IMG/VR virus record: IMGVR_UViG_3300043418_000114
Coordinates: 186,001 to 250,000 of that record
Strand: one strand, 5' to 3'
Length of the DNA: 64,000 bases
Shown: positions 31,308 to 48,297 of the stretch, in pieces
Layout of the letters: the number at the start of each line of letters is the position of its first letter
Position numbering within the stretch: position 1 is the first letter of the stretch
The notes under the pieces: model-generated
The model's input: the letters and a program-made list of their open reading frames with translations, nothing else
Told to the model about the DNA's origin: nothing
Databases searched by the model: none
Position numbers and translations under genes: made by a program

Positions 31308-31772
31308 TTACTGAGCGTACCAGATTTCTTTGAAGCCTTCGTCTTCGGTAGGAGGATCGTAACTCTCAATCATGTTTTTCATCACATGCTCAGGAATGTT
31401 TTTGCCAACTCGTGAGTTCAATCGACGATCATGTTCTTCCTTCTCAGGAGTCTTAAAGACCACCGCGATAAACTCATAACCAGGCAACATATTGAACTTG
31501 CGTTCACGACTGCGAATGGTAGTAGAAGTCTGGTCCCAGATCACATCCAAGTTGTTTGCATGACAGACTGCCGCCTGATTAGCCATCAACTTAACAGCAA
31601 TAGGCATGTAGTCTTTGAACACTTCATTGTAAGTCTTGCCTTGGCGAACTGCCTCAGCTTCAACGAAATTGTCAGTAGAAACAACAGGCATGTCCTTGGT
31701 CCAATCTTGGTTCTTAATCCAAGTAGACTTGCCTGCGGCAGGCACACCAATCAACATATAACACTTAGGCAT
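31308..31772 (-). CDS. P-loop kinase, polynucleotide-kinase-like (AAA_33)
   Basis: GVPAAGKST, 'VSTD', 'VIWDQT', 'RR..SR...IPE'. Confidence 0.8.
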   Translation of the reverse strand: MPKCYMLIGVPAAGKSTWIKNQDWTKDMPVVSTDNFVEAEAVRQGKTYNEVFKDYMPIAVKLMANQAAVCHANNLDVIWDQTSTTIRSRERKFNMLPGYEFIAVVFKTPEKEEHDRRLNSRVGKNIPEHVMKNMIESYDPPTEDEGFKEIWYAQ

Positions 31773-31781
31773 ATTTTCTCC

Positions 31782-32189
31782 TTACTGAAACACTGTCTTT
31801 GCTACGGTTGATGCCAACTTGCCGTCATACTGACCGGCATATGCTTCTTTCAAATGTTTCATGAATGAAGGCATGCTCTCGTGATGGAGGGCAATTTCAC
31901 GAAGGGCGCCTTCTCCAAGTTGCTGAGGCAAAAACTGTTCCAAAACTTCGCGTTCGACCACGAATTCAACGAATAGTTGATTACGAGCTTGAAGGGCGGC
32001 AATGGTTTCATCGATATTCTTGATGAATTTCTTTACCACAGCAACAACTTCTTGGTCAGTAGTTTCTCGATTGGCATTCTTACCAACCATGCTAGCTTCG
32101 CCCAACAGCGTAGTCAACAGACTCGCTTGTGGATCACCGGACTTACGTGCGGCAACTTGTCTTGTTTTGATTTGTTCCATCAATGTCAT
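31782..32189 (-). CDS. GatB/YqeY-domain protein
   Basis: 'L.EQIK....AARK...DQEVVAVVKK.IK...LE.FLPQQL...YAGQYDGK'. Confidence 0.75.
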   Translation of the reverse strand: MTLMEQIKTRQVAARKSGDPQASLLTTLLGEASMVGKNANRETTDQEVVAVVKKFIKNIDETIAALQARNQLFVEFVVEREVLEQFLPQQLGEGALREIALHHESMPSFMKHLKEAYAGQYDGKLASTVAKTVFQ

Positions 32190-32199
32190 TTTGTTTTCC

Positions 32200-32742
32200 T
32201 TAGTGATGGGCGCGAATTTCGCCCTTTAATGCATCAGCAATCATATCATCTAAATTGCTAACTACTCGACCAGTTGCGTCAAATGCAACATCACGGGCAC
32301 GATATTTCTCCATGCCAGTTTTGTTACCATGAACATGTCCATAGAAATGAACACTGCCACGATGCATTTGGTCCCATTCCCAGATAGGGTAGTGCAACAT
32401 AATCACGATTTGTCCATTGTGATTATAACGCAAATATTGATGAACTTCTTTAAACTGAAGGCGAAACAATTCATCCTGCAACAATTTGCGGTCATGATTG
32501 CCTTCAATCAAAATCTTTTCACCATTTAATCTGCATAAGATATCAACTGCATCTTTTGCAGGCAAGAAAGCAAAGTCACCCAAGATGAATGTTTCATCTT
32601 CTGGAGCTACCTTACTGTTCCACTCTGCAATCATCTTCTCTCGCATATCTTCTACATCCTTAAAGCCTGCCCGAGTTACTGGACAGAACTTCATGATGTT
32701 TGCGTGACCGAAATGCAGGTCACTTGTAATCCATTTTGTCAT
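32200..32742 (-). CDS. Calcineurin-like metallophosphoesterase
   Basis: SDLHFGH, LGDF, GNHD, HYP and GHVH motifs. Confidence 0.9.
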   Translation of the reverse strand: MTKWITSDLHFGHANIMKFCPVTRAGFKDVEDMREKMIAEWNSKVAPEDETFILGDFAFLPAKDAVDILCRLNGEKILIEGNHDRKLLQDELFRLQFKEVHQYLRYNHNGQIVIMLHYPIWEWDQMHRGSVHFYGHVHGNKTGMEKYRARDVAFDATGRVVSNLDDMIADALKGEIRAHH

Positions 32743-33421
32743 TTTGTTGTCTTTCTTAAACTTTTCTCAAACCATTCAGTTAGGTATGAGTTTTGACTAG
32801 TAACATTGTCCTCGTAGAACTCTTGTTCTGCGGCAACACGAATCATAGTGTATAACTCAGTGATGCGTTGTGGATGATCGAATCCTTGACGCACTTGCTT
32901 ACGAAATACGCGAGTCAAGAACCAACGTTCAAATTTTGTCATACGTATTCCTTATTCAAACGTTCACGTGCGGCACTTGCGAATTCGCTGATGTTACCAC
33001 ACTTATCTTCCCAACGCAACAGATTTCGACAAGTGTAACCAATGTCACGCTTATTGTAGCAAACTGCTTCCTGATTTACTTCACCATTAACCAACACACG
33101 GCAGTGATAGTTGCCATTGATATTGCGAACAGTTACTTCATGTTCTACTGCACCAACGAGACAACGCTGGATGCGAATGAGTTGTTTATATCGTTCCATG
33201 TTATTCTCCAATGTACTCACGAACCCATTCAAACTTAGCTTCGCTAGCTTTGACCCATTTGAATTGTTCACGGCGTCTGTTAATCTTGTCAAAGTCGAAA
33301 CATATAAAGATCCAACCTTTGTCCTCTGAGAACATGACGGTATCTTGGACTTTGACAATCTGTACGATTTTGTCTTTCATCTTTGCTACAATCATCATTA
33401 TGTTCTCCGGTTAATGCATGT

Positions 33422-33450
33422 ATTATATAACCAATTCCATTTAATGTCAA
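33422..33450 (-). promoter_or_regulatory. sigma70-type early promoter (repeat family)
   Basis: TTGACA-TTAAATGGAATTGGTTA-TATAAT. Confidence 0.8.
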
Positions 33451-34224
33451 CCGAATCTTGCTTTGTCAGGAAAGAGTCGTCTTGCATCAATTCTAGCCTG
33501 TAGATAAGTTTCTACCACTTGAGTATCCATTTTCTTAAATCCAGATTTAAGCAAAAAGAATAATTCATCCTTCTCAGACTCTACAGTAACTGCGTGTACA
33601 TCACCTTCGCTGATTTTGGCAACTGAGTTGCAAATAAATGTTATCTGCACTCCCAGTTCTCGTGTTAACACATCAGGTCCAGTCATGTCACCTGGGACAT
33701 AATCATACTGATAGGTATTAGGAACGTCAACGTAGAATACGTAGCTCATGTGCGTTCTCGTTGTACTCGGCCTATACGTGCTGACTTGTTCCAGTCATAC
33801 TTTACACCGTCAGGAGTCTTACCGTCTACAACAGAGTCAACTCCAAACATACCCACGATTTCAAAGTCCGGACCTGTGATAGTCACAAACTCGTTCATCT
33901 TCTTTGCGTACTTCATAGCTTCGTCCAACGACAAAACTTCATGTTCTACACTCTTACCTTTTACTTTATACATTAAAGTCATTTAAACTTATCCTTTTCA
34001 ATCCATACTTGTTTGATATTTCTATGTGATCGGCAATTGCCTCTTTCTTTGTTTTATATCGTCCTAACACCGCACTCTCACCATTACCATAAAAGATACA
34101 ACTTTCATATGGGGCATACTTATACAAGTCGCCATCTAATTCAACTGTGCTTAGTGAGATATCAGCTGGGAACATCCAAACATGATCATCGCTTACAATT
34201 TGCCAACGCTTGCTATGCATACTA

Positions 34225-34731
34225 TTAAGTGTCACCAAGTTGTTGCGGACTACGCTTAGGGATGATAAGTCCGGATTCAAGTTCGATTCCATTAATTGTA
34301 TGAGGCTCGTTTTCGTCATAAGTCCATCCCAATGCTTTCATCATCTTGTGCTTTACTAGCAAGTTAGGACTGCGAAACACTTCTGTGTCTTGAAATCCCA
34401 TCATTACGCCAATCTCACAAACTGCGCCACTACGACACACACCGGCATGACAATGAACAATCACGTTCATGTGATTTTCTTGTGCATGTTGTAGCAATCG
34501 AACTAGTTCATCGGCTTGCTCTTGACTGCATCTCCATGCTTCGTCAAGTGAGTAATCATTTGCTTCAATATCAAGAAACTCAAACTGATGAACTTCTTTG
34601 AATTTGTACAAGGGAGTAGGAAATTCATAAGCAGGATCAACAATTTGAATCAGCATTGCATTGTCGCCAGGGTTGATATGAAACCCTTTCTTGATATCAC
34701 TGAGTGATACGTTTTGAATCCACATTGTCAA
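34225..34731 (-). CDS. Cys-based (PTP/DSP-type) phosphatase
   Basis: VHCHAGVCRS (CX5R). Confidence 0.85.
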   Translation of the reverse strand: MTMWIQNVSLSDIKKGFHINPGDNAMLIQIVDPAYEFPTPLYKFKEVHQFEFLDIEANDYSLDEAWRCSQEQADELVRLLQHAQENHMNVIVHCHAGVCRSGAVCEIGVMMGFQDTEVFRSPNLLVKHKMMKALGWTYDENEPHTINGIELESGLIIPKRSPQQLGDT

Positions 34732-35136: not shown

Positions 35137-35808
35137 TTATCTCCAAAGTAAATCAAAGTTGCCAGCTAGTACTTTAGTAGCATTAGCAACTTTACCTGTT
35201 AAGTGATCTTGAACTTTATCATCTTGGAAACGATATGTGCGAATCTTGTCACCGCGCATGCCAGAACCAACCTGAGTCTTTCTATCACTAGCTATTTCGT
35301 TATTGTACATCATTTGGTTATTGCTGTCAACACGTTCTTGTATTGCACTCAATGCTTCGTTATAGCTATTCTCACGGCTACGACATTGAGCCGTTGCAAC
35401 TACGCCGCTTGGGATGTGCGTGATTCTGCAACTGTTTTGATGCTTGTTACGATGTTGACCACCTGCACCAGTGCCACTATACCATTCGATTCGTAAATCT
35501 TTTTGTTGTATAGTTGTTGTGATTTTAGCAGGATCGATAACGGCAACTGTCACTGTGCTTGTATGCACTCGACCTTTGCGTTCTGTTGGCGGTACACGTT
35601 GTATTCTGTGTCCACCTGGCTCGTTGTATAAGCCGGATAAATCAGTACCCTCTATCTCTAGATGGATCTCGCCTTGATGCTCATTTATCAGGCGGGTAGT
35701 TCAGCCGAGCTTGGAAGCCATGCGAATATAAGACTTCGCTAAATCTTTTACAAACAACTTACTGTCATCGCCACCTTCTGCGGCTCTAATCTCAATTACA
35801 CGTTTCAT
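35137..35808 (-). CDS. Class I release factor, RF1-type, lacking domain 1, with an in-frame UGA at codon 36
   Basis: AAGGAG SD; 'IEIRAAEGG', 'GGHRIQRVPPTE.KGRVHTST', GAGGQ and 'IRTY' all in one frame across TGA at 35701-35703. Confidence 0.85.
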
Positions 35809-36273
35809 GATATTCTCCTTTAATTGTGTTGAGTATTTATTATACACTATAAATCCGTATCTGGAAATAAGAATGGCCGGACACTTCCACCACAGAAGCC
35901 CCGGCCTTAGTTGTTTACACTGTCTCACGTTATAGTTTCTGGAAACTACTATTCGTCAACCTAGGGCTTTGTCCGTATCCTGAAATTGGATCGTGTAGTA
36001 GTCCCTATGCACTAAACTACGTTGTGGTTGTAGTCAATACCTCACACATCATAACGACTGTGTGACGCCGGGTTTTAGGTTTGATATGTCACTAAATGCT
36101 CAATCCTGAGAAAGATTTTACGGCATGCCAGCATTTTTTACTGTGAACAGAAGGTGTCTCGGATACTATTTTAAACTTCTTCATATCAAATTAGGGGTTG
36201 AATGATTAGGCTGACTCCTGGGCGTCCCCTGGCTTTATTTAAAGTGACTCACACTCACCTAATCAATCAGTAG

Positions 36274-37695
36274 TTACGACAAGTCGTAACGTGTCTTCAT
36301 CACTGTCTTCAACATGACGGCTTCTGGTGTGAAGTCTTCCAAGTCGTTAGACAATACAGAAGTTGCTAGTGCTGGGCTAAAGCCTGACACTAGTGCAGTA
36401 CCACTCTTATCGAATGACACTGGTGTGTTACCGTAACTTGCGTTCAAGTTCCAGAAGACAACTTTTGGAAGTGCGTAGCCTGCGGCTTCGTACTTACGTG
36501 CGATCATTTGCATCGCGGTGTCGTCATGCTTAACACATTGGTTAAATTGCATGTCTGAGAAGATAACAAGAGTTTCAGGCATTTCTGCTTGTGGAACACT
36601 GTTTTCTGTCGCAGTCTTCAGGATCTTTTCAAACGCCTTGTGAAGGTCTGTACTCATATCCCAGTTAGACTTGACCATTTGGTCAATCTTTTGGTTGATG
36701 TTACCCTTTAGGTGCATCAATTCTGGCTTGCTTGAGAAGGTCAAGAAGGTATCTTTGAACTTACCCTTGTTCTTATCAGCAAAGTACAAACCTAGGCTAA
36801 CAGCAACTTCCATGCAAGACAGGTTGCTCTTAGAGCCATGACCACCTGCTGGACAAGACATTGAACCAGAAACGTCAACCAGAGGAAGAACGTTTGCATC
36901 GCCAACGTAGTTAGGCATTGCTTCCCATTGCTTTTGGATCAAGTCAGTTTCAGTCTTGTTAAACTGCATCCAACCACCAATACGACCCTTCAGTACGTCA
37001 TATGGGAACACTGCGCCTGCGTTAACCTTAACACCAGCTTCGCCCTTAACGAGCTTAGTTACATATTCAGCGTATGTAGTACCATGACGGCCAAACGCTT
37101 TCTTGTAACGTGCATGTGCCACTGAAGGAACATGTGAGTAGTTGATGTTATCCCAATTTTGGGCACACATTTGTGTTTCAACAACATTAGTAAGGCCGAC
37201 TAGGCTCTTACGATATTGTTTAGGGGTCATTCCGAAGAATTGACGGATTTCACGTGCTACTTCACCTTTACGTGGAGTCCACTTAGCCGCAAGACCGTTA
37301 CCTGCACGTAGTGCATCGCCGAGCATAGTGTATGCCTTGGCCTTCACAGGCTGAGTCTTAAACACTAGCAAGTCGTCGTAACGACCCAATTCTGGAATCT
37401 TAGCCATCAAACGCATTGCGTCTTCTGGGTTAGTCTTTTCCAAGTGAACGAGGATGTCTCGGAAGACTTGACGTTCACCTGAACCACCACGTGCATCACG
37501 TGCCCATTGAGCGATACGCAATGCAAGATCAGAGTTCTCTACATAAGCCGCTGTGAAAGCCGGCACGATGTTTTTACCACGGCTTGCACCGATGTTGTAA
37601 AACAAATCAACACATGCGTTAGCACTTGATTTGCGAGCCTTCATACCATTGGTGGTACGAGTTGATTGATTCTTAACTGCTTCTGCGAATTGCAT
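36274..37695 (-). CDS. DUF2828-like TROVE/Ro-related protein with C-terminal vWA (MIDAS) domain
   Basis: 'ARD.RGG.GER', 'G.YDDL', 'AAKW.PR', DVSGS MIDAS, 'SDMQF', 'VFWNL', 'VSGFS'. Confidence 0.8.
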   Translation of the reverse strand: MQFAEAVKNQSTRTTNGMKARKSSANACVDLFYNIGASRGKNIVPAFTAAYVENSDLALRIAQWARDARGGSGERQVFRDILVHLEKTNPEDAMRLMAKIPELGRYDDLLVFKTQPVKAKAYTMLGDALRAGNGLAAKWTPRKGEVAREIRQFFGMTPKQYRKSLVGLTNVVETQMCAQNWDNINYSHVPSVAHARYKKAFGRHGTTYAEYVTKLVKGEAGVKVNAGAVFPYDVLKGRIGGWMQFNKTETDLIQKQWEAMPNYVGDANVLPLVDVSGSMSCPAGGHGSKSNLSCMEVAVSLGLYFADKNKGKFKDTFLTFSSKPELMHLKGNINQKIDQMVKSNWDMSTDLHKAFEKILKTATENSVPQAEMPETLVIFSDMQFNQCVKHDDTAMQMIARKYEAAGYALPKVVFWNLNASYGNTPVSFDKSGTALVSGFSPALATSVLSNDLEDFTPEAVMLKTVMKTRYDLS

Positions 37696-38307: not shown

Positions 38308-39441
38308 CTATCGTAAATTAATTTTTACGTTAGGGTCTAATGTGATGCTAGACCAATTCTTGTTGAAATTGCCCCATATATCTTTCTCATTCTTGTAATC
38401 AGAAAGCAATGATAGCAATTGTGGATTGAATCGCTCAACTATCTTACGTTGAATAAGACCTGTTGTGGAATTCAGGGTGATATCCTCTACTGACATTCTA
38501 TGAATCGTTTGAGGGATTCGTATGTCTGCGAAAGGACTAAAAGTCATGTTGTTGTCAATGTGCCAATACTGATGATCATAAAAAATTGTTGAGTATAAAA
38601 ACTTCATCAACTGTTCTTGGTCGTAGTATTCTTCCATTGAATCTTTGTACTTGGCTACAACATTGGGACGCTTCAAAAACCAATAAAGATAATCAGTTTC
38701 TTTAGCTAGTTCGTCAATGTGTTTGCCTTGATAGTTTGCCAATGCGTTGATTGCTTCGCCGTCACGGTACTGATATGTCTCTGCATAGAAGCCAGTTGCA
38801 TACCAATTTAATTCCGTAAATGCACTTGATACATCATATCCCCAGTGTTTACTGGATACAAAGTCTACCAAGTCACTATCGTACTCTCTAACTCTGCCCA
38901 AAAACTTATGTAACGTATCGTCACCTTGTTTAGGCACATATGCTGTTAGAGTATAGTCTTTTGTGTAGCTGTCTAGTACAGCCCATGTTGTTAGGGTATC
39001 CAGTCCTGCTGAATACAACACATTCATGCGTTCAATATTATTGTACTTGTAGAAGTTTCGTGTGTTTTCTAACAATATATCGCCGATGATAATCGACGAC
39101 TCTTCCAATGACAGTAGGGTATCATTGGGAATTTTAGGTTCATTGTATGTAACAATGCCGTAGCCTTCAGTGGCTAGGTTTGTTTGTTCACCATTGCGTT
39201 CATATAATGGAAAACCTCTGAGAACTGGGTGATACACTTTTTCGTCATGTATCACGCACCATTTCCCAGCTGGCTGATAGCCATCAAGTATTTCTAGTAG
39301 CGTATCTGCTAGAGTACAATCTACGCTATAACCCTTATACCAGATGTTATCTTTTTGTTTCCAGCCGCCATCTAAAAACAGGCGATCTGAAACTTTGTTC
39401 ATCGCCTGTATTGGACAATTGGATCCGATGTAGAAAAACAT
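38308..39441 (-). CDS. Asparagine-synthase-like (PP-loop) protein
   Basis: 'VLYSAGLD' PP-loop-like motif and 'SPF.D'. Confidence 0.5.
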   Translation of the reverse strand: MFFYIGSNCPIQAMNKVSDRLFLDGGWKQKDNIWYKGYSVDCTLADTLLEILDGYQPAGKWCVIHDEKVYHPVLRGFPLYERNGEQTNLATEGYGIVTYNEPKIPNDTLLSLEESSIIIGDILLENTRNFYKYNNIERMNVLYSAGLDTLTTWAVLDSYTKDYTLTAYVPKQGDDTLHKFLGRVREYDSDLVDFVSSKHWGYDVSSAFTELNWYATGFYAETYQYRDGEAINALANYQGKHIDELAKETDYLYWFLKRPNVVAKYKDSMEEYYDQEQLMKFLYSTIFYDHQYWHIDNNMTFSPFADIRIPQTIHRMSVEDITLNSTTGLIQRKIVERFNPQLLSLLSDYKNEKDIWGNFNKNWSSITLDPNVKINLR

Positions 39442-39665
39442 TATCGCTTGTTGCCGATGCGCTTTAGATAATCACGGCCGACTAGGCCCTTTTCGATTTC
39501 TTGCAATGCAGTAACAAGATGGCCTGCTTTTGTTGCTAGTTTTGGTCGATGACCACGGGATAATTCACGAGTACGTTGACTTGCGATTAGAATCAAATCA
39601 TATCGATTGCCAACTGCATTAACTGCATCTTCGCTAGTATAGCGAACTCTACTTTCTGTCGTCAT
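39441..39665 (-). CDS. rpoZ: RNA polymerase omega subunit
   Basis: 'T.EDAV..VGNRYDLILIASQR.REL..G..P.......VTALQEI..G'. Confidence 0.88.
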   Translation of the reverse strand: MTTESRVRYTSEDAVNAVGNRYDLILIASQRTRELSRGHRPKLATKAGHLVTALQEIEKGLVGRDYLKRIGNKR

Positions 39666-39694: not shown

Positions 39695-39770
39695 TGGAGC
39701 GGGAAAAGGGGCTCGAACCCTCGACCTATACCTTGGCAAGGTATCGCTCTACCAACTGAGCTATTCCCGC
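39695..39770 (-). tRNA. tRNA-Gly(GCC)
   Basis: Cloverleaf; loop TTGCCAA; CCA. Confidence 0.92.
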
Positions 39771-39776
39771 ATGTTC

Positions 39777-39851
39777 TGGTACATCGACACGGTTTCGAAC
39801 CGCGGACCCTCTCCGTGTAAAGGAGACGCTCTACCCCTGAGCTATCGATGC
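39777..39851 (-). tRNA. tRNA-Val(TAC)
   Basis: Loop TTTACAC; CCA. Confidence 0.9.
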
Positions 39852-39862
39852 ATATATTCTAT

Positions 39863-40218
39863 TTAGCCACCCTGTTGGCTATCTTTAATTTCTGTTCCCC
39901 AGTCAATTTCCTTCTTGTCATCAGACATATCAGGTAATGGAGGTGGAACGTAACGTTCACGCTTTGGCTTTTCACCAAAGATTTTGTCCATGTTCTCACC
40001 GAATTCTGTAGGACTAATACTAAATGGACGAGGACGAGAACCCTTGCTCATTACTTAGATTCCTTACGTGAACCCTTCTGACGGGCATCGCTCTCTGCGA
40101 TTTGTGTAAAGCTACGCAAGAATGCGCCACGCTTGTGTGAATCTAGAATTGTTGCAGATGCTATCTTAACTAGCTTGCCTAGCTTCACTGCTTTTGGATC
40201 ATAACCTCTACATGTCAT
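39863..40218 (-). other. Two small hypothetical CDS (39863-40051; 40051-40218)
   Basis: SD sites; TAATG coupling. Confidence 0.55.
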
Positions 40219-40241
40219 ACTATTTTCCTTTTATGTTAAAT

Positions 40242-40319
40242 TGGTCTCGGTAGTAGGATTCGAACCTACGACCCTCTGCTCCCAAAGCAGATGCGCTAAC
40301 CAGACTGCGCTACACCGAG
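40242..40319 (-). tRNA. tRNA-Pro(TGG)
   Basis: Loop TTTGGGA; CCA. Confidence 0.92.
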
Positions 40320-40325
40320 ATTGTT

Positions 40326-40398
40326 TGGATGCGGGTGACAGATTCGAACTGCCGATGCTCCGAGCTTATGAGACTGGAGTGGTGACCACCCTACCCGC
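40326..40398 (-). tRNA. Atypical initiator-like tRNA-Met(CAT)
   Basis: C1:A72 mismatch; loop CTCATAA; shrunken D arm; CCA. Confidence 0.7.
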
Positions 40399-40410
40399 GT
40401 AAATCGTTTT

Positions 40411-40485
40411 TGGTGCGTGATAGAGGGATCGAACCTCTGACCTTCTCAATGTCACTGAGATATTCTACCGCTGAAATAATCACGC
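40411..40485 (-). tRNA. tRNA-Val(GAC)
   Basis: Loop GTGACAT; CCA. Confidence 0.85.
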
Positions 40486-40490
40486 ATTTT

Positions 40491-40610
40491 AACAGGTTCT
40501 CTTTTTTCGTGCTACCACTACACCAACGCGAAGACCAACTCGCGCCTGGGATTCGAACCCAGCCCCTCTTTTTTACAGAAAGATTATTAAGATTGCTGAA
40601 AAGAACCTAA
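40491..40610 (-). ncRNA. CAGCA-scaffold RNA copy 4, enclosing a circularly permuted tRNA-Tyr(GTA)-like domain
   Basis: TAGGTTCT-TTT-CAGCA, anticodon arm TCTTT-CTGTAAA-AAAGA, T arm, closed acceptor, D arm, AGAACCTG. Confidence 0.85.
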
Positions 40611-40620
40611 TGGTCAAACT

Positions 40621-40696
40621 TGGTGGAGGTGACAGGACTCGAACCCGCTACCTATTGCTTGCAAAGCAACCGCTCTCCCAGGTGAGCTACACCCCC
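40621..40696 (-). tRNA. tRNA-Ala(TGC)
   Basis: G3:U70; loop TTTGCAA; CCA. Confidence 0.92.
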
Positions 40697-40771
40697 GAAA
40701 TTTGTTACACACTACTTATCTCATTATACGCCATGTGTAAGGGCGAGGCTTCTAACTCTTTCGAGTTTTGT

Positions 40772-40848
40772 TGGTGCGGATGGTGGGACTCGAACCCACA
40801 AAATTTGGCTTCTAAGACCAACACGTATACCAATTCCATCACATCCGC
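40772..40848 (-). tRNA. tRNA-Leu(TAG), short variable loop
   Basis: Loop CTTAGAA; CCA. Confidence 0.88.
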
Positions 40849-40859
40849 GTAATTCTATT

Positions 40860-40937
40860 TATACTGAAACACACTAACCAAGTCTCCTAACCTGTATCAA
40901 CTGCCCCACTTGTGCAGTTATCAATGCGTTTTAGTAT
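40860..40937 (-). repeat. Long-stem element (family 2)
   Basis: TATACTAAAACGCATTG...TAGTGTGTTTCAGTATA. Confidence 0.65.
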
Positions 40938-41118
40938 AAAGGCTATCAGAGGCTTGCCATCGCCCTTAGGTTATACTGATATTACTCGTTGAAATATACC
41001 GAAGTATAGAGTTGGATTCAACAAGACCCTACTACTCACCTAAACTCATGTAGTCTGTAACGCATCATCATGAAGGGTCCAGCGACCTCTATCGTTACAG
41101 CATCTGGTTACATTCTTT

Positions 41119-41200
41119 CTATACTGAAACACACTGACTCTCCAGTATTTCTACTTTCGCCGAGTTTGACCGCGTAGTCGTGCAATGTGTTTTAGTATAG
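41119..41200 (-). repeat. Long-stem element (family 2)
   Basis: CTATACTAAAACACATTG...CAGTGTGTTTCAGTATAG. Confidence 0.65.
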
Positions 41201-42079
41201 TGGAGCACTGAGAATACATGCTTACCGAGTAACACCTCAGACATTATTACAATCCTTGCGAGACTGCTTTCTTCTGACTTCCACTGCAACCTCTTGCGAG
41301 TATCACAGTCTGTTACCAACATCGCCGTTTTAAGTCAGGCATTAGACTTGACGCTGTATGCTATTCTACGCTTTCTATCCCGTTGACCTTTAGAGCCATT
41401 CACTACCGCTAAGTAGTTACGAAACTTCCTGCATAAACAGATTTCACCTTGCGAGTTACGTCTGACTGGATTATCTTGCGACTCCAGTATTAGATGCTTT
41501 TCACATACAACCGAGACAGACTTTGCTTTTTTAATCGATAGAAGGGATCGAACCTTCAGCCGACTGCTTGAAAATGCAGTTGATCTACCATTGATCTATA
41601 TCAACCTACTGTGATGTGCTGTCTCAGTTGCTTCATAATCTTTTGGACTACAAAATACAACACGCCACGTACCTTTTGTCTCGCGGACTACTCAGTCGTC
41701 TTTCACGATTAATGTCGGGTCTCGGCTTTCGCGTACCTCCATCAACCATTCAAACTGCATTACAACTCTTAGATGCGACTCCTCGAATCATAACACTACC
41801 CTTTCTCATACCAATTAACTGGACTGGTTTTGTCGTGAGGTCAGCACCACCTGTTACTCTCTAATGACTTGCGTTACCCTCGATATTATCTCAGGCGCTT
41901 AAGCCACTAATTCTTTCCACAACTTCCAGCGTCATTGTTATCACCACCGGTCTTATCAGTGATGAAACCCTCGCGGGTTTGAGCAGGCTTGCTTAGATGA
42001 ACTATTTCTAGCGCGGGTCTGTAGGAGACTACCGCTTTGGGCCGATCACTCGGCTTATTCTAATGAGGCTAAGCCCCCA
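41201..42079 (-). ncRNA. GOLLD-like giant structured RNA with an embedded tRNA-Glu-like domain
   Basis: About 880 nt without a credible ORF; many GCAA/GNRA-capped stems; ends GCATGTATTCTCAGTGCTCCA; tRNA-cluster context; cloverleaf at 41533-41605. Confidence 0.65.
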
Positions 42080-42083
42080 TAAA

Positions 42084-42200
42084 TTCTTATACTCGCATAC
42101 ACTTGCAATATTGAAATTGCCTACCGGAAGGATATCTCACATCCAGCTGTGTCCGCTCACATCCGTATGGCCTATACGTTTATGTATGCGAGTATAAGAA
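42084..42200 (-). repeat. Long-stem element (family 2-like)
   Basis: 17-bp perfect stem TTCTTATACTCGCATAC / GTATGCGAGTATAAGAA. Confidence 0.6.
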
Positions 42201-42204
42201 CTAC

Positions 42205-42309
42205 TTTCTTAACATTGTTGAACATACTAGTGCATTTCCAAATTATGCTACTCCTCATCAGGGATGGAATCGAACCAACATCCCTAATACATTCAACAAT
42301 GCTAAGAAA
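42205..42309 (-). ncRNA. YrlA-topology tRNA-mimic RNA
   Basis: About 25-bp stem enclosing T loop TTCGATT, a short closed acceptor hairpin, then D arm TAGCATAATTTGGAAATGC. Confidence 0.6.
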
Positions 42310-42326
42310 ATTCTTAGCAATAATTT

Positions 42327-42394
42327 TTTAAAGAACATCACTGATTTCTCAGTGTCAATACAAGTATTGTATAAGGTTTTTAATTCACTGTCAA
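42327..42394 (-). promoter_or_regulatory. sigma70 promoter with boxB-like hairpin and boxA-like element
   Basis: TTGACA-N17-TACAAT; CACTGA-GAAA-TCAGTG; TGTTCTTTAAAA. Confidence 0.7.
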
Positions 42395-42424
42395 CAACTT
42401 TTTTAAGATTGTTAACCATTTTAT

Positions 42425-42500
42425 TGGAGCGGGAGGCGGGAGTCGAACCCGTCTATTTCAGTTTGGAAGACTAACGTGTAACCACAAACACTTCACCCGC
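42425..42500 (-). tRNA. tRNA-Gly(TCC)
   Basis: Loop CTTCCAA; U73; CCA. Confidence 0.88.
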
Positions 42501-42512
42501 ATAAATAACTTT

Positions 42513-42865
42513 ATGCATATCTATGACGCTATCACAAACTCTGGATTACACATCCACTTGTCCATGAGCGCCGATAATACATTTTACATTCTAGTATACG
42601 ACATTGATAACTTCATGTTAACTATGAAATTTTTCAACAATGTAGATACTGCAATGCAATTTATCCATTCACTATGAGTAGCCCAACAGATTACGAAATC
42701 TTATATAGATTAAACACTAGTCCATATGCAGAGACTAAGAGTTGGGTACTGCCTAATACATTCAAAGCAATGTTCTCAAATGAGAACTTACCTGAATTTG
42801 TTATTGATGAACTATTAAAGAAACAGACGTTTAAATTAGACGATCAGTTTCCTCAATACAAATAA
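42513..42865 (+). other. Two small coupled CDS (42513-42677, 42674-42865) antisense to the tRNA array
   Basis: ATAAATA upstream; ATGA overlap. Confidence 0.5.
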
Positions 42866-42867
42866 TC

Positions 42868-42943
42868 TGGCATCCCGGGAGGGATTTGAACCCCCAACTT
42901 ACGGTTTTGGAGACCGTTGCTCTGCCAATTGAACTACCGAGAT
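42868..42943 (-). tRNA. tRNA-Trp(CCA)
   Basis: Loop CTCCAAA; G73; CCA. Confidence 0.9.
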
Positions 42944-42949
42944 ATATAA

Positions 42950-43010
42950 AACAGGATGCTTATTTTTCAATTAAAAGTTGAATTATAAGATGTTGCTGGA
43001 CGCATCCTAA
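42950..43010 (-). ncRNA. CAGCA-scaffold RNA copy 5, with a bare Lys(TTT) anticodon stem-loop
   Basis: TAGGATGC-GTC-CAGCA...TTCAA-CTTTTAA-TTGAA...GCATCCTG. Confidence 0.85.
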
Positions 43011-43014
43011 AACT

Positions 43015-43104
43015 TGGCGGAAACGGTGAGATTCGAACTCACGGACCCTTTGAAAGATCGCCGGTTTTCAAGACCGGAGCCATAGACCACTCGACCACGT
43101 TTCC
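43015..43104 (-). tRNA. tRNA-Ser(TGA)
   Basis: Loop CTTGAAA; long V arm; G73; CCA. Confidence 0.92.
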
Positions 43105-43117
43105 ATTAAAATATTTA

Positions 43118-43202
43118 TACCATATGTAAACACACTAGCGTTTTTCACTAAACTACAACTTGACTGGACTTGACCAGTGACTCTATTGTGCTTGCATATG
43201 GT
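43118..43202 (-). repeat. Long-stem element (family 2)
   Basis: ACCATATGCAAGCACAATAG...CTAGTGTGTTTACATATGGT. Confidence 0.65.
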
Positions 43203-43315
43203 GACAGTTTAGTCCGATAACTGCCAAGAGTTGTGGTGATCCGGCACACCTTTTATGTATAAGTTGACTACAAGAGGCTTATACACTAGGGCCTTCACGT
43301 TGCCCTATTTTTTAA

Positions 43316-43442
43316 TACCATATAGAAACACACTGTCGTTTCTCTTTCCAGTCTAGACAACCTCGCTTACGAAGCACGATTATATCACAGGATTACGCAT
43401 CCTGCTCGTCACTGTACTCAAGCAATGTGTTTTTATATGGTA
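43316..43442 (-). repeat. Long-stem element (family 2)
   Basis: TACCATATAAAAACACATTG...CAGTGTGTTTCTATATGGTA; overlaps the CCA of tRNA-Lys. Confidence 0.65.
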
Positions 43443-43512
43443 GGGGCACAGGGAATCGAACCCTGATAGACCGGTTAAAAGCCGGATATTCTAGCCGTTG
43501 AATTATACCCCC
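43438..43512 (-). tRNA. tRNA-Lys(TTT)
   Basis: Loop CTTTTAA; CCA. Confidence 0.9.
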
Positions 43513-43515
43513 ATA

Positions 43516-43590
43516 TGGTCCCAGTGCTGAGATTCGAACTCAGTTCTCTCGGCTTAAGAGGCCGGACTTCACCTTCAAAGTTTCTCTGGG
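43516..43590 (-). tRNA. tRNA-Lys(CTT)
   Basis: Loop CTCTTAA; CCA; imperfect acceptor stem. Confidence 0.75.
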
Positions 43591-43689
43591 ATGGATCGTA
43601 AGAAATTTTCTTTTACGTGCCATCTGAGACCATACGGGGGTCAAAGATGACACTATCGTTTACCTGAACGTTTCATGTCATTTACCTTT

Positions 43690-44046
43690 TTAAGATTTAA
43701 GTGCTTTTAAAATATTATCCCAAGATTCAGTTGGATTATGACCTTGATCTAGCAAGGCAACATAAGTCTTAACTGCATCTTCTGGAATCTTGAAATAGAT
43801 GTTTGCGTAGGTGCAGTCGAATGAATCATCTTCATCACGAACGTACCATGGATGACTTGACATTTCATCAAATACATCTTCATAGTCTTCACGATTGCCA
43901 CCACCATTACGTGTGTGAACAACAATGTGACCATCTTCTACATAAACATCACGAAAGCGACCGAAGTCACCTTTTGTTTTATCTAACAGACTCAGGAGTT
44001 GATCCGAGTTAGGGTTAGTGCCAAACATCATGTTATACAAACTCAT
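43690..44046 (-). CDS. Hypothetical phage protein
   Basis: AAGGAG SD; 'GRFRD...HTRNGGGNREDY...DD.FDCTYA'. Confidence 0.65.
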   Translation of the reverse strand: MSLYNMMFGTNPNSDQLLSLLDKTKGDFGRFRDVYVEDGHIVVHTRNGGGNREDYEDVFDEMSSHPWYVRDEDDSFDCTYANIYFKIPEDAVKTYVALLDQGHNPTESWDNILKALKS

Positions 44047-44144
44047 TTCATTCTCCTTTGTTAATTTGTGGAAGTTCCGATAGCACCCATCGTCACTTAC
44101 AACCGTTGAGTAGCCTTGCATCAAAACAGTGCTACTATTTGCTC

Positions 44145-44219
44145 TGGAGGACAGGATAGGAATCAAACCTACCTAGAACGGATTTGCAATCCGCCACATA
44201 ATCGCTCTGTCACCTGTCC
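44145..44219 (-). tRNA. tRNA-Cys(GCA)
   Basis: Loop TTGCAAA; U73; CCA. Confidence 0.82.
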
Positions 44220-44228
44220 ATATTTTGT

Positions 44229-44316
44229 TGGCGGAGCATGTAGGAATCGAACCTACTCACCTCTTTCGAAATGATGGATTAGCAATCCATTGCCTTAACC
44301 GGTCGGCCAATGCTCC
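44229..44316 (-). tRNA. tRNA-Ser(GCT)
   Basis: Loop TTGCTAA; long V arm; CCA. Confidence 0.9.
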
Positions 44317-44331
44317 GTAAAATATCTGATT

Positions 44332-44500
44332 AAAAATCATAAAATAGTGTATTCAGCTGGCAGACTGCAACAAGATACTATCCTCTAATATATTAGTATC
44401 ACAGTGATATTAAGTTCCGGACCCTAATATCACCAAAGTCTGGCAAATAAGATATATAAATTCAAAGTTTATTAAATGAATACACTAATTTATGATTTTT
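44332..44500 (-). repeat. Long inverted-repeat-bounded element
   Basis: AAAAATCATAAATTAGTGTATTCA...TGAATACACTATTTTATGATTTTT. Confidence 0.6.
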
Positions 44501-44576
44501 GGTGGGCCCAACAGGACTCGAACCTGTGGCCAAGGAATTATGAGTTCCCTGCTCTAACCAACTGAGCTATAGGCCC
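44500..44576 (-). tRNA. tRNA(CAT), Ile2-like or Met
   Basis: GGGCCTA acceptor; loop CTCATAA; CCA. Confidence 0.85.
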
Positions 44577-44586
44577 ATAATCTAAA

Positions 44587-44766
44587 ACCATATTATAATA
44601 CACTCCCAATGCATGTCAAGCACTGTAACTTCATGGTACATCTTGAACCACAGTTTCGAACCTGTGAAATGTAGCACTATCTAGTATCAACTCTTTCGAA
44701 TTCAAAACATACTAGACCCGGCAAGCTGGGGCCTCTATATATGACAAGAGTATACTATAATATGGT
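44587..44766 (-). repeat. Long-stem element (family 2)
   Basis: ACCATATTATAGTATACTC...GAGTGTATTATAATATGGT; overlaps the CCA of tRNA-Leu. Confidence 0.6.
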
Positions 44767-44849
44767 GCGGGTGGCCGGAATCGAACCGGCACGGTGTCTC
44801 CACCGACGGATTTTAAGTCCGTTACGTCTACCTATTTCATCACACCCGC
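44763..44849 (-). tRNA. tRNA-Leu(TAA)
   Basis: Loop CTTAAAA; long V arm; CCA. Confidence 0.92.
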
Positions 44850-44856
44850 ATATTAC

Positions 44857-44933
44857 TGGCGCCTCGTAGGGGACTCGAACCCCTGGCCTCTTGCGTGACA
44901 GGCAAGCGATCTAACCAACTGAGCTAACGAAGC
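44857..44933 (-). tRNA. tRNA-Asp(GTC)
   Basis: Loop CTGTCAC; G73; CCA. Confidence 0.9.
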
Positions 44934-44938
44934 GTAAA

Positions 44939-45090
44939 TGGTGGGCTATCGCGGATTCAAACCACGCAACAACTCTATGTTGTAGAGTTAGGATTTCCAA
45001 TCACTCTAAAGCCTATAAATTCATCACCGTTGACGTTTTACCATTGAAAGACACGGTGCCATCTGTCTCAGTCGCATTACCTATCACCCC
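44939..45090 (-). ncRNA. About 150-nt RNA with a tRNA-like 3' end
   Basis: T-like arm CGTGG-TTTGAAT-CCGCG, then ATAGCCC-A-CCA; probable 5' partner GGGTGAT. Confidence 0.45.
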
Positions 45091-45139
45091 ATGCTCGGAT
45101 TCATAGATAGGCATTCTACTGATAATTCAATGTTTATCT

Positions 45140-45226
45140 TGGTGGATGCGGCTGGAGTTGAACCAGCAGTGCCTTTCGGGCGGCGGGTTTACAGCCCGCT
45201 GGGGTTACCAATTTTCCTACACATCC
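45140..45226 (-). tRNA. tRNA-Tyr(GTA)
   Basis: Loop CTGTAAA; V arm; CCA. Confidence 0.9.
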
Positions 45227-45227
45227 A

Positions 45228-45656
45228 TTATTTGTTTTTGCCACACCAAGTGTCAGTCTGTGAATGACAATTGGGACAGAGTAATCTTAAGTTTTTAAAC
45301 TTGTGATTGTGATTATCGCCGTCTATGTGATCTAAATGTAGAGAAATTTCTTTTCCCATCCATTCTTCTAATCCACACGACGAGCATTTGTTATCTAATA
45401 TTTTTTCTTTTAACAAACGCTTTTTCAGTTTTAGTGTTTGATATGTAGGATGCAATCCTTCTAGAATTTCATTCAACTCTATCTTCTTTGCACCACCACC
45501 TATCTTAAAATCTAAACCTAATCTTTTTGCTCTACGCCAAACTGTAACATCTGGCACATTAAAATAATGTGCTAACTTGCTCAAGACTGGCGTAATGTTA
45601 TACTGTTCTATCAATTCAGTATCTGTAAACTTTTCTGTACTATGTTTTTGTTTCAT
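45228..45656 (-). CDS. HNH endonuclease
   Basis: CxxC...LHLDHIDGD..N....NLRLLCPNCH. Confidence 0.88.
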   Translation of the reverse strand: MKQKHSTEKFTDTELIEQYNITPVLSKLAHYFNVPDVTVWRRAKRLGLDFKIGGGAKKIELNEILEGLHPTYQTLKLKKRLLKEKILDNKCSSCGLEEWMGKEISLHLDHIDGDNHNHKFKNLRLLCPNCHSQTDTWCGKNK

Positions 45657-45699
45657 ACAGTATTTATGAAAAGTTAGATATGAAATCTAAAAATAAACT

Positions 45700-45776
45700 T
45701 GGTGCCCCCAGCGGGACTCGAACCCGCAGAATCTTGATTTTGAGTCAAGCACGTATACCAATTCCATCACAAGGGC
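45700..45776 (-). tRNA. tRNA-Leu(CAA), short variable loop
   Basis: Loop CTCAAAA; CCA. Confidence 0.85.
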
Positions 45777-45904
45777 AAAAAGAAACATACTAGCGATCTA
45801 CTGTTGTTGTGATTGAACACAGGACTTAGTATAAGTCGTCCCAACTCCGCATCTTTTTAACACAAGTCCTGCGGTTGCTTGTGAGCTAATATATTTCAAA
45901 AACT

Positions 45905-45980
45905 TGGTACTCCGTATGGGAATCGAACCCATCTTACCAACGTGAAAGGCTGGTGTCCTAAACCGATAGACGAACGGAGC
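45905..45980 (-). tRNA. tRNA-Glu(TTC)
   Basis: Loop CTTTCAC; CCA. Confidence 0.9.
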
Positions 45981-45988
45981 ATAGTTAT

Positions 45989-46091
45989 TCACTATATGTA
46001 AACACAAAAGCAATACTAACCGGGCGGTCGATATCGGCGTTAGCCAAGTCACTTACCCAGACTTTCAAACTAATGTGCTTACATATAGTGA
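45989..46091 (-). repeat. Long-stem element (family 2)
   Basis: TCACTATATGTAAGCACA...TGTGTTTACATATAGTGA. Confidence 0.65.
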
Positions 46092-46123
46092 CTGCTTCAC
46101 AGCAGTGTATATGTTGGTTGTTT

Positions 46124-46192
46124 TTTTAAAGAACAGTGCTGATTTCTCAGCGTCAATACATGTATTGTATAACATGTTTGAATCATTGTCAA
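46124..46192 (-). promoter_or_regulatory. sigma70 promoter with boxB-like and boxA-like element
   Basis: TTGACA-N17-TACAAT; GCTGA-GAAA-TCAGC; TGTTCTTTAAAA. Confidence 0.7.
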
Positions 46193-46331
46193 ACTATTTT
46201 TAAGTATTTTAGATGGATTCGAACCATCGTTTCACTGGCGATTCCCACCATACAGTTACTATGACTTCACTGTGTGGGCCCTTGCGTCCTAAGCCCCTAG
46301 ACGATAAGACACTTAGAAATAGTCTGACAAA
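46185..46331 (-). ncRNA. tRNA-like RNA with extended acceptor stem and expanded anticodon domain
   Basis: About 25-bp terminal stem, D arm, T arm GATGG-TTCGAAT-CCATC; no CCA. Confidence 0.55.
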
Positions 46332-46400
46332 TTGTTAAAGAACAGTGATTGATTTCTCAATCGATACACGTATTGTATGCGAGTTTTTATTTAGTGTCAA
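46332..46400 (-). promoter_or_regulatory. sigma70 promoter with boxB-like and boxA-like element
   Basis: TTGACA-N17-TACAAT; GATTGA-GAAA-TCAATC; TGTTCTTTAACAA. Confidence 0.72.
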
Positions 46401-46445
46401 GCGTTTCCTAAAATATTTTGATAAATAGTTAAAAGGAACCCCAAA

Positions 46446-46943
46446 ATGAAAAAGTACGCAACATTAAGCATTGATAGCTCAACTCTAGCAACTGAAATCA
46501 TGACATATTTGAAATCTTCAATCGATGTTGAGGATAACGATCATCATATCCATGCATTTCACGTGTTAAATTTGACTGATCTTGCCAACACTACACTCAA
46601 CACTACGTTTACCGGATTAACCGCAAAATTCGTGGGGCATTTGACAATCAATGGCAGTCAAATGTTTAATCATTGCTATGATTCTGCATTTATGCTTATT
46701 CCATTGGAAGATTGTGAATCAACAGTGGTTAAGATTTTTGACGTTGCTCCTGGCGCAGTATTTAATCCAACTGACTCTTGCTACATGGACCAAGACTGCA
46801 CACTAGCAAATGCATTGCCACTTACATCACCTATTGTGATTAGTGCGAATACAACTCACACCATTGAAACAACCAACTTCACAAAACTAGCAGATGTGTT
46901 AATGATCATCTTCAATGAAGATGTATCAACGTTACTAGCTTAA
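46446..46943 (+). CDS. Hypothetical (possibly cupin-fold) protein
   Basis: ATAAATA and AAGGA upstream. Confidence 0.6.
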   Translation: MKKYATLSIDSSTLATEIMTYLKSSIDVEDNDHHIHAFHVLNLTDLANTTLNTTFTGLTAKFVGHLTINGSQMFNHCYDSAFMLIPLEDCESTVVKIFDVAPGAVFNPTDSCYMDQDCTLANALPLTSPIVISANTTHTIETTNFTKLADVLMIIFNEDVSTLLA

Positions 46944-46944
46944 G

Positions 46945-47019
46945 TGGTCCGGCGTAGTGGAATCGAACCACTATAATCACTTTAGAAGAATGATGTCCTA
47001 TCCGTTGAACGAACGCCAG
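46945..47019 (-). tRNA. tRNA-Arg(TCT)
   Basis: Loop CTTCTAA; CCA. Confidence 0.88.
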
Positions 47020-47086
47020 ATAACTGATAGCATATCACAATAAAAAGAAAAAGTCAAGAGATTTTTAGTTTCTTGACTTTTTTGTT

Positions 47087-47162
47087 TGGCTCCCCTACGT
47101 GGGCTCGAACCACGGACATTTTGATTAACAGTCAAACGCTCTACCAACTGAGCTATAGGAGA
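47087..47162 (-). tRNA. tRNA-Asn(GTT)
   Basis: Loop CTGTTAA; G73; CCA. Confidence 0.92.
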
Positions 47163-47169
47163 ATAAATG

Positions 47170-47244
47170 TGGTGCCCTCGAGGTGAATCGAACACCTGAT
47201 CCTCCGCTTACAAGGCGGATGCATTACCACTCTGCTACAAGGGC
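47170..47244 (-). tRNA. tRNA-Thr(TGT)
   Basis: Loop CTTGTAA; CCA. Confidence 0.9.
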
Positions 47245-47310
47245 ATAATTTTATTTATAGTGAGTATATCACAGCAAAACTTTTTTGTCAAGTCTTGCCA
47301 TGATATCTTC

Positions 47311-47871
47311 CTACGAAAGCAAGATTCTAGAATGCTTTGGCACACCTGCCATCAAGTATTCCATTTGGTCTGCAAGAATTGTTCGTTGTTGCAGAATCAT
47401 GTTTTCATAGTGGTTAGGTTCATAAGGAACATAAAGTAGTTCCATACGTGCTTCTTTCAAAGACTTATGACCCTTCTTAGAGTTACATTCCTTACATGCA
47501 GTAACTACGTTCATCCAAGTGTTGTCGCCGCCATGGTACCGAGGTACAATGTGGTCACGGCTTAGATTGTGATAGTTAGGGAAATGTCCACCACAGTATG
47601 CACAAACATACCGGTCACGACCAAACAATGTCTTGTTAGTCAATGCAACATGTGCGTGACGATGTGGGTTATAACCATGACCCTTGATAGCAATAATAGA
47701 AGGAGATTCTAGGTAGCTTAGTGATCCGTCACGTTGTACGCCACCACGATACTTCGCAACAATTTCACCCATAGACCATGCTACGGAGTCAGTTGCGTGA
47801 TATGCAATTGCGTCATCGTTTGAGATCCATTGCCGGGGAACTCCTGAAATATCTAGTGCTAGAACAGCCAT
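47311..47871 (-). CDS. HNH endonuclease (McrA-like)
   Basis: RD..VCAYCG...DHIVP...GG..TW.NVVTACKECN. Confidence 0.88.
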   Translation of the reverse strand: MAVLALDISGVPRQWISNDDAIAYHATDSVAWSMGEIVAKYRGGVQRDGSLSYLESPSIIAIKGHGYNPHRHAHVALTNKTLFGRDRYVCAYCGGHFPNYHNLSRDHIVPRYHGGDNTWMNVVTACKECNSKKGHKSLKEARMELLYVPYEPNHYENMILQQRTILADQMEYLMAGVPKHSRILLS

Positions 47872-47916
47872 GCTTTTCTCCTTTGTGTTACTGTCTACAT
47901 TTATTTAATGTTCCTT

Positions 47917-47991: not shown

Positions 47992-48032
47992 ATGTTAATG
48001 ATTATATGACAAACACCATTATTTGTCAAACT

Positions 48033-48108: not shown

Positions 48109-48109
48109 A

Positions 48110-48283: not shown

Positions 48284-48297
48284 ATCATTCTCCTTCT

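Follow-up and report, generated by a model that had tools for sequence, protein, structure and literature searches.

How can a release-factor gene be expressed when a stop codon stands where RF1 has a conserved tryptophan? The question is raised by a 64,000-nucleotide window (~41% G+C; positions 186,001 to 250,000 of the IMG/VR virus record IMGVR_UViG_3300043418_000114), which is part of a 364-kb IMG/VR contig (L001); "the window" denotes this whole stretch, and all coordinates are counted from its first letter. An earlier note made from the letters alone had described an RF1-type gene interrupted by an in-frame UGA, and had proposed that programmed read-through makes the factor only when RF2 activity is low, in analogy to the autoregulatory frameshift of prfB.

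An RF1-type gene split by a single in-frame TGA

The release-factor gene lies on the minus strand at 35137-35808 and consists of a 222-codon frame whose single interruption is a TGA. The following elements can be distinguished:

35839..35867 (-): promoter-like site upstream of the gene, TTTCCA, 17-nt spacer, TATAAT; 10/12 matches in a consensus scan, a pattern match only
35815..35820 (-): Shine-Dalgarno element AAGGAG, 6 nt before the ATG, read off the sequence
35808-35806 (-): ATG start codon
35704..35808 (-): first part of the ORF, ATG plus 34 codons, for the first β-strand and helix α5 of RF1 domain 2, including the codon-reading tip GG(D/E)D
35701..35703 (-): in-frame TGA, codon 36, at the position of Trp144 in E. 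coli RF1
35137..35700 (-): second part of the ORF, 187 codons plus TAA, for the remaining domain 2 (with the PPT motif), domain 3 (GGQ) and domain 4
35139-35137 (-): TAA terminator, in the same frame as the ATG

The codon preceding the TGA is GGC and the nucleotide following it is A. Profile searches place the 35-residue piece on positions 103-132 of the Pfam PCRF domain and the 187-residue piece on PCRF positions 152-194 and the RF-1 domain, while the corresponding stretches of the NCBIfam prfA model are 115-144 and 164-341; overall the two pieces occupy RF1 profile positions of about 107-136 and 156-333. Given that the two ORFs fall on successive stretches of the RF1 profile, they constitute one release-factor gene split by a single codon, and when a 79%-identical homolog is aligned with E. 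coli RF1 by HMMER, the interrupted codon proves to be that of Trp144. The split reading frame is thus confirmed as a real feature of the sequence, and all sequence-level statements about it hold: a Shine-Dalgarno element and an ATG at 35808 open a single frame with a TGA at a conserved tryptophan position, as had been claimed. The start ATG is kept in 75 of 76 homologs and the terminator TAA in 74 of 76. As a search for TGA-interrupted same-frame ORF pairs showed, no other gene of the window runs on for long in frame past a TGA without a nearby start codon. Gene callers currently split such genes or mistranslate them under genetic code 4.

A domain-1-less release factor derived from RF1

The predicted product is clearly a class-I release factor of 222 amino acids derived from RF1, which lacks domain 1 and is distinct from PrfH. 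Pfam detects the PCRF and RF-1 domains, and among the equivalog models those for prfA (TIGR00019 and NF001859) score highest with 163-197 bits, as against 96-117 bits for prfB and 43 bits for PrfH (TIGR03072); the prfA scores do not reach the equivalog cutoffs of 400-423 bits, and the full-length RF1 architecture is absent. A sequence search of the PDB likewise recovered RF1 with 142 bits and RF2 with 92 bits, with PrfH far below. The alignment spans only residues 112-340 of RF1 and the protein starts at about RF1 residue 109, so domain 1 is missing, as the earlier note had recognized; no ORF for domain 1 was found upstream of the gene. An AlphaFold (AF2) model of one homolog (P0002; pLDDT 91) superimposes on ribosome-bound RF1 with a TM-score of 0.92 and 2.0 Å rmsd, and the AF2 model of the 79%-identical homolog has a strand at residues 2-9 and a helix at 14-33.

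Comparison with E. coli RF1 reveals PPT at the position of PAT (the PxT motif that had been noticed from the letters), the glutamine of HRIQRV, the threonine of VHTS and the GGQ motif, all of which vary little or not at all across the family alignment. The glutamine and threonine are residues that we take, from RF1-ribosome structures (e.g. 4v63), to be the third-base readers of RF1. Given that these RF1 decoding residues are kept, the protein is predicted to recognize UAA, including the gene's own TAA, and UAG, and not UGA. Residues 1-35, on the other hand, supply the first strand and the helix α5 that carries the codon-reading tip, so that a product without them would be crippled.

The protein had also been likened to PrfH, the partner of RtcB2. 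The likeness holds to the extent that both are class-I paralogs with a GGQ domain and without domain 1. It does not extend to family membership: PrfH was rejected, with 43 bits against a cutoff of 166.65 and no adjacent RtcB gene. In the structural comparison of P0002, PrfH ranks only 50th with a TM-score of 0.70 as against 0.92 for RF1, and the phage protein retains the RF1 PxT-type decoding loop.

Conservation of the TGA among relatives

Whether relatives keep the TGA at this codon had been named as a check on the interruption, an error or a recent pseudogene being expected if all homologs had TGG. That refuting condition clearly fails. Pooling sequences of jumbo phages in IMG/VR with those of metagenomes and of three cultured Alphaproteobacteria gives 151 unique family members, of which 142 have TGA at the aligned codon; a further relative (L092) has it displaced by a 2-residue insertion. 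The base that follows is A in 94 members of the pooled set, G in 35, C in 13 and T in none. All 78 IMG/VR loci that cover the position have the TGA at 67-100% protein identity, many of them on contigs of 140-425 kb, and it is found in 71 of 71 unique IMG/VR genes, which form the main clade. In an independent set of 80 metagenome loci it occurs in 73 of the 73 that could be classified, plus five partial ones.

The TGA is also seen in six bacterial genome contigs, including those of the isolates Jiella sp. LLJ827 (L104), Gemmobacter caeni DSM 21823 (L105) and Thalassospira xianhensis (L106). In Jiella the gene is surrounded by cellular-looking neighbors, namely RNase H, a peroxiredoxin and DsbD_N; the presence of the interrupted gene amid such genes in Alphaproteobacteria indicates that the family is not confined to phages. 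In Gemmobacter a Thg1-like tRNA-repair enzyme is encoded nearby.

Database proteins of 222-225 amino acids that show 'GW' at this site were considered as TGG homologs and rejected, the DNA having TGA in all seven loci checked and the proteins being gene calls under code 4. A DNA search of GenBank phages with the locus gave no match, and the protein matches to GenBank phages are at most 44% identical and mostly full-length RF1 of the bacterial type. The most divergent IMG/VR member, used as a single-protein query, brought in just one new relative.

Spread and recurrence of in-frame UGA

Beyond the main clade, four cluster representatives with 47-58% identity (L092-L095) have TGA-A at the same codon in 4/4 cases. 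Three others (L096, L098 and L099) have a true TGG, and more remote members have Phe, Leu, Ile or Ala at the Trp position. In a maximum-likelihood tree the main clade and L092 are uniformly TGA, and deeper in the tree TGA and sense-codon lineages interleave. Judged from these sequences, the in-frame TGA is derived and recurrent in the family: sister lineages carry TGG at this codon, and TGAs arose independently at other codons. One additional relative (L097:551-1222) retains TGG at the Trp codon; four codons further on, at a site occupied by Leu or Ile in relatives, its frame is interrupted by TGA-A.

A second domain-1-less clade is encoded by huge phages; it comprises LR745206.1 (L090:1300-2055), a 635-kb uncultured phage, along with L198-L203 and L207. 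Members of this clade have Phe at the Trp position, and all eight contain an in-frame TGA within the sequence '…SI(stop)LTG', which in four of the eight is accompanied by a second TGA 8 codons upstream. In the 40 kb surrounding the LR745206 gene the longest ORFs have many TGG and zero TGA codons, which indicates that this phage too uses TGA as a stop. The repeated appearance of UGA, and never of a same-frame UAG or UAA, in one gene family suggests that selection acts to keep the stop codon as such.

Two further observations concern other homologs. In one from a Hahella sp. metagenome-assembled genome (L103:1865-2528; JANQMN010000065.1), the Trp codon is TGG, and the frame closes at CTT TAG C and continues in +1. 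This resembles the prfB shift site with UAG replacing UGA; there is no obvious upstream SD-like element, the case is a single contig with no relatives nearer than 59%, and the shift may be an assembly indel. Separately, a short RF1-like subfamily (L204-L206, L208, L211; proteins P0159, P0162 and P0192) starts with '…GGVF.F…' and seemingly lacks the helix α5 region.

Selection on the TGA and alternative readings of the codon

In a set of 71 homologs, codons 1-35 have a pN/pS of 0.23 and those from codon 37 onward one of 0.27, and such low values before and after the TGA indicate that both parts are translated in this frame. The 71 unique main-clade genes contain 17 columns of conserved Lys, Glu or Gln, all 17 of which are A/G polymorphic at the third position with a minor allele at 6-48%; the TGA column is invariant, and the other two Trp columns are TGG in 71/71. 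The invariance of the TGA where comparable A/G third positions vary argues that a change from TGA to TGG is selected against. A stop codon kept among diverged homologs, with in-frame downstream sequence under purifying selection, is the pattern by which programmed read-through is recognized, and it is the pattern seen here.

These data bear directly on the simplest alternatives, namely that the TGA is a sequencing error, the mark of a recent pseudogene or a selenocysteine codon. A single transition from TGG would suffice to produce it, and a UGA followed by a hairpin recalls the bacterial SECIS element. However, the interruption is neither an error nor a pseudogene, because the identical codon recurs in the 142 unique sequences from independent assemblies and pN/pS is ~0.25 on either side; the TGA thus stands as a conserved and selected feature, as had been suspected. 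As for a selenoprotein, this was rejected: the corresponding residue in homologs is Trp, Phe, Leu, Ile or Ala and never Cys, the hairpin is not conserved, and no tRNA-Sec was found among the tRNAs of the window. From these comparisons this group of explanations appears effectively refuted, and it is the least credible of those considered.

A second alternative is that UGA is efficiently read as sense, either under genetic code 4 or through a dedicated suppressor tRNA whose gene lies outside the window in the phage genome. It would agree with the Trp that gene callers assigned to many homologs under code 4, and with an odd tRNA-like gene in the window whose 8-nt anticodon loop contains UCA; moreover, the window covers 64 kb of the 364-kb contig. 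Against this, TGA serves as a true stop in other genes here, in line with the earlier reading: it terminates 50 of the 118 window ORFs of at least 60 amino acids (~40%), and 29 of the 38 TGA-ending ORFs of at least 80 amino acids sit in ATGA stop/start overlaps. ORFs of at least 80 amino acids in the window contain 278 TGG codons, and reading TGA as sense raises coverage less than reading TAG or TAA as sense. None of the 45 tRNA genes that ARAGORN detects in the window (64 kb of the 364-kb contig) has the anticodon UCA. The same TGA occurs in the Jiella, Gemmobacter and Thalassospira isolates, which we take to use the standard genetic code, and the examined huge-phage region has no TGA in its longest ORFs. 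Given that TGA is a normal terminator, that the other Trp codons of the gene are always TGG and that only one gene in the window is TGA-interrupted, code 4 was rejected, and we regard efficient sense decoding in general as very improbable.

A third possibility is a split gene that yields two separate products, the 35-residue peptide and a C-terminal fragment from re-initiation, which would work either as an assembly or each by itself. Gene callers do annotate products of 183-186 amino acids that start shortly past the TGA in some clades. Yet in 60 of 71 genes the first 15 codons past the TGA include neither ATG nor GTG nor TTG, which argues against re-initiation, and in the remainder the positions of such codons vary. 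In the window gene the first start codon is 44 codons downstream, and starting there would remove the PPT motif. Furthermore, the N-terminal piece constitutes the first strand of domain 2 and the helix α5 with the codon-reading tip. We consider separate fragments even a shade less credible than efficient sense decoding, though not as thoroughly discounted as an error or a selenocysteine codon.

Programmed read-through of the UGA, as originally put forward, accounts best for these observations: the TGA is conserved and selected, it is a normal stop in this genome, and there is no suppressor among the 45 tRNA genes of the window.

Sequence context downstream of the TGA

Two features past the TGA could be relevant to its reading:

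35683..35700 (-): nucleotide-conserved stretch directly 3' of the TGA, consensus RCT ACC CGC CTG ATA AAT, a candidate read-through context
35670..35694 (-): possible hairpin CGCC-TGAT / ATC-A-GGCG, 6 nt after the TGA, in the MFE fold

The third positions of the six codons past the TGA are 72-93% conserved, as against ~40-65% upstream. Synonymous divergence is saturated across most of the gene (pS ~0.72), and codons 34-45, at 0.44 of the mean, form its deepest trough; in the main clade the synonymous constraint is strong from +3 to +20. Together these values suggest that a clade-specific nucleotide element exists past the TGA. In most sequences it is within the conserved stretch that the other two frames are shut by stops, which occur within 13-22 nt.

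The earlier note had further pointed to a hairpin shortly after the TGA. In the window sequence CGCCTGAT pairs with ATCA(A)GGCG (35694-35670) in the minimum-energy fold, and in the main clade the hairpin is pairable in 90% of cells. Codon choice there favors it, the region having a mean z of -1.5 relative to synonymous resampling and a control region -0.2. However, the region in the window sequence is no more stable than dinucleotide shuffles (z = -0.21), and RNAalifold on 71 sequences yields a consensus structure of only 3 pairs, with essentially no compensatory changes in the hairpin. Distant TGA-bearing homologs have neither the conserved stretch nor a hairpin at a fixed distance. The hairpin was accordingly rejected as a family-wide feature, given the 3-bp consensus and the lack of an equivalent in these distant members; within the main clade it stays a weak candidate.

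The description of UGA-A as a leaky context was not borne out, since true TGA stops in the window are likewise most often followed by A, so that UGA-A by itself is no mark of leakiness. The base at +4 (A, G or C, never T) is in addition constrained by the next amino acid.

A proposed mechanism of read-through and its dependence on RF2

Termination at UGA is carried out by RF2 only. Ribosomes initiating at the ATG would meet the UGA at codon 36, and a full-length factor would need read-through. A likely reader is encoded in the window:

42868..42943 (-): phage tRNA-Trp with anticodon CCA, detected by ARAGORN; likely near-cognate UGA reader, ordinary

This tRNA has A9, a U11-G24 pair and a 5-bp anticodon stem, and none of the UGA-suppressor features looked for (a Hirsh-type 11-24 pair, position 9 and a 4-bp anticodon stem) is present in it; the 4-bp stem is among the features of UGA-reading tRNA-Trp (PMC13092985). 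Read-through of TGA in E. coli inserts mainly Trp (PMC11126739). We propose that an ordinary Trp-tRNA(CCA), of the host or the phage, decodes the UGA as a near-cognate and thereby puts back the ancestral Trp that corresponds to Trp144 of RF1. Insertion of Trp would explain the choice of a Trp codon for the stop, TGA being a single transition from TGG. The conserved ~18 nt downstream, perhaps with a weak hairpin in the main clade, may tune the process, and the efficiency of read-through could be very low.

Because RF2 alone terminates at UGA, competition between RF2 and Trp-tRNA would set the yield of the factor, and it is reasonable to expect read-through to depend on RF2. In sum, we consider it probable that the full-length factor requires read-through of the UGA, most likely by Trp-tRNA(CCA), at a yield governed by RF2 competition. 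As to the use of such a dependence, we speculate that a shortage of RF2 would lead to more of an auxiliary UAA/UAG terminator, which in turn would free RF2 for UGA. Such a rationale would fit the stop codon usage of the window, where 49% of stops are UAA, a codon open to both factors, and 42% are UGA: an additional reader of UAA and UAG might leave RF2 to the genes of this second group. The benefit of a coupling to RF2 shortage would be indirect, as an RF1-type product cannot replace RF2 at UGA, and is speculative.

The chief rival to an RF2-responsive switch is a constitutive attenuator, in which a fixed low level of UGA read-through holds a potentially harmful extra factor at a few percent of the translational capacity of its mRNA without any sensing. 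The conserved TGA and the purifying selection on both sides fit it equally well, no stimulatory element is conserved family-wide and the tRNA-Trp is ordinary. However, a weak ribosome-binding site would suffice for low expression, and yet the strong AAGGAG is kept. The in-frame UGA also arose at least twice at different codons, which points to the stop as a useful property, and any UGA read-through mechanistically depends on RF2. For these reasons a fixed attenuator seems unlikely, although it is a more serious contender than the alternatives discussed above, and we favor the reading of the UGA as a putative RF2 sensor.

Comparison with known systems

The most obvious parallel is prfB, to which the gene had been compared from the start. 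Both have an early in-frame UGA, at codon 26 in E. coli prfB and codon 36 here, and in both the efficiency of RF2 termination decides on the full-length product, as reviewed for prfB (PMC5009743) and as proposed for the phage gene. In contrast, prfB uses a +1 frameshift, whereas the phage gene continues in the same frame and has neither the CUU-U slippery site nor an internal SD; the prfB-type +1 signature is absent at the TGA, with GGC preceding it, frame 0 continuing and the +1 and +2 frames closed. The products differ as well, in that the phage protein is of the RF1 type and predicted not to read UGA. Given that the predicted specificity is for UAA and UAG, the loop would be one of cross-regulation by RF2 and not of autoregulation. 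The analogy therefore stands as regards a release-factor gene with an early UGA, and fails as regards frameshifting and autoregulation.

In the RNA phage Qbeta, the UGA of the coat gene is read by tRNA-Trp to give the A1 protein. A phage UGA read by a near-cognate Trp-tRNA would likewise yield a longer, required protein in the present case. In Qbeta, however, the short and long products are both functional and the stop is the natural end of the gene, whereas in the phage gene studied here the short product is a 35-residue fragment without evident function, and the UGA stands in place of a conserved Trp inside the protein.

Eukaryotic eRF1 recognizes all three stop codons. The eRF1 gene of a giant amoeba virus is the only one said to use read-through, in addition to frameshifting, in a 2016 review by Atkins and colleagues (PMC5009743), and plants regulate eRF1 by an autoregulatory loop of read-through and NMD (PMC5397192). 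In these systems too the expression of a release-factor gene depends on read-through of a stop; they differ in being truly autoregulatory, while the phage gene encodes a bacterial-type RF1 paralog and its stop is read by RF2. The same review reports no RF2 gene in which an early in-frame UGA is followed by same-frame continuation, and an RF1 counterpart was unknown (PMC5009743). Literature searches found no published description of the present family or of its UGA.

We therefore advance a broader proposal, tentatively and as one that falls somewhat short of probable: widespread, hitherto undescribed domain-1-less RF1 paralogs of jumbo and huge phages and of some Alphaproteobacteria may be under obligatory same-frame read-through of an early UGA, which would form an RF2-sensing circuit that tunes termination at UAA and UAG and that evolved at least twice at different codons. 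If true, this would be a case of release-factor control of the read-through type, which was predicted before prfB was sequenced and is not known to have been found in bacteria. The recoding of the release-factor gene prfB is a classic of translational feedback, and the family would fill this gap with well over a hundred variants. It would also offer a natural test bed for the determinants of bacterial UGA read-through, namely context, tRNA-Trp and RF2, and it points to an uncharacterized third class-I release factor carried by large phages beside their tRNA arrays. Given that three cultured bacteria, all non-pathogenic, carry the gene, the idea is directly testable.

Genomic neighborhood

The gene sits in a module of RNA- and translation-related genes beside a tRNA array:

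31308-34731 and 39441-39665 (-): neighbors, comprising an AAA_33 kinase, a YqeY-like protein, a dual-specificity phosphatase and an RNA polymerase omega/Rpb6-like protein
35929-36273: non-coding gap of 345 nt between the phrog_850 gene and the side of the release-factor gene
36274-37695 (-): phrog_850 'RNA-binding protein' of 473 aa, DUF2828/DUF7788, with a weak match to the Ro60 vWA domain, upstream of the release-factor gene
39695-54882 (-): array of 45 tRNA genes for nearly all amino acids, detected by ARAGORN

No RtcB is encoded among the neighbors, which include the phosphatase, a protein of unknown function, the RNA-binding protein and the omega-like protein. A scan of 33.0-39.7 kb, including the surroundings of the Ro60-like gene, yielded neither Y RNA nor any other relevant Rfam family at permissive thresholds. 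In one relative (L083) a phosphatase and an AAA_33 kinase likewise follow the release-factor gene.

The tRNA array has some peculiarities of its own. Two of its members are oversized, a tRNA-Pro of 90 nt at 48483-48572 and a tRNA-Glu of 99 nt at 48578-48676, and may be intron-bearing or mis-calls. The tRNA-like gene at 41532-41606 (-) combines a perfect 5-bp anticodon stem with an 8-nt anticodon loop, AUUUUCAA, in which ARAGORN assigns the 4-base anticodon UUUC and in which UCA occurs in an atypical register; a tRNA of the quadruplet-reading or frameshift type is conceivable, as is a pseudo-tRNA.
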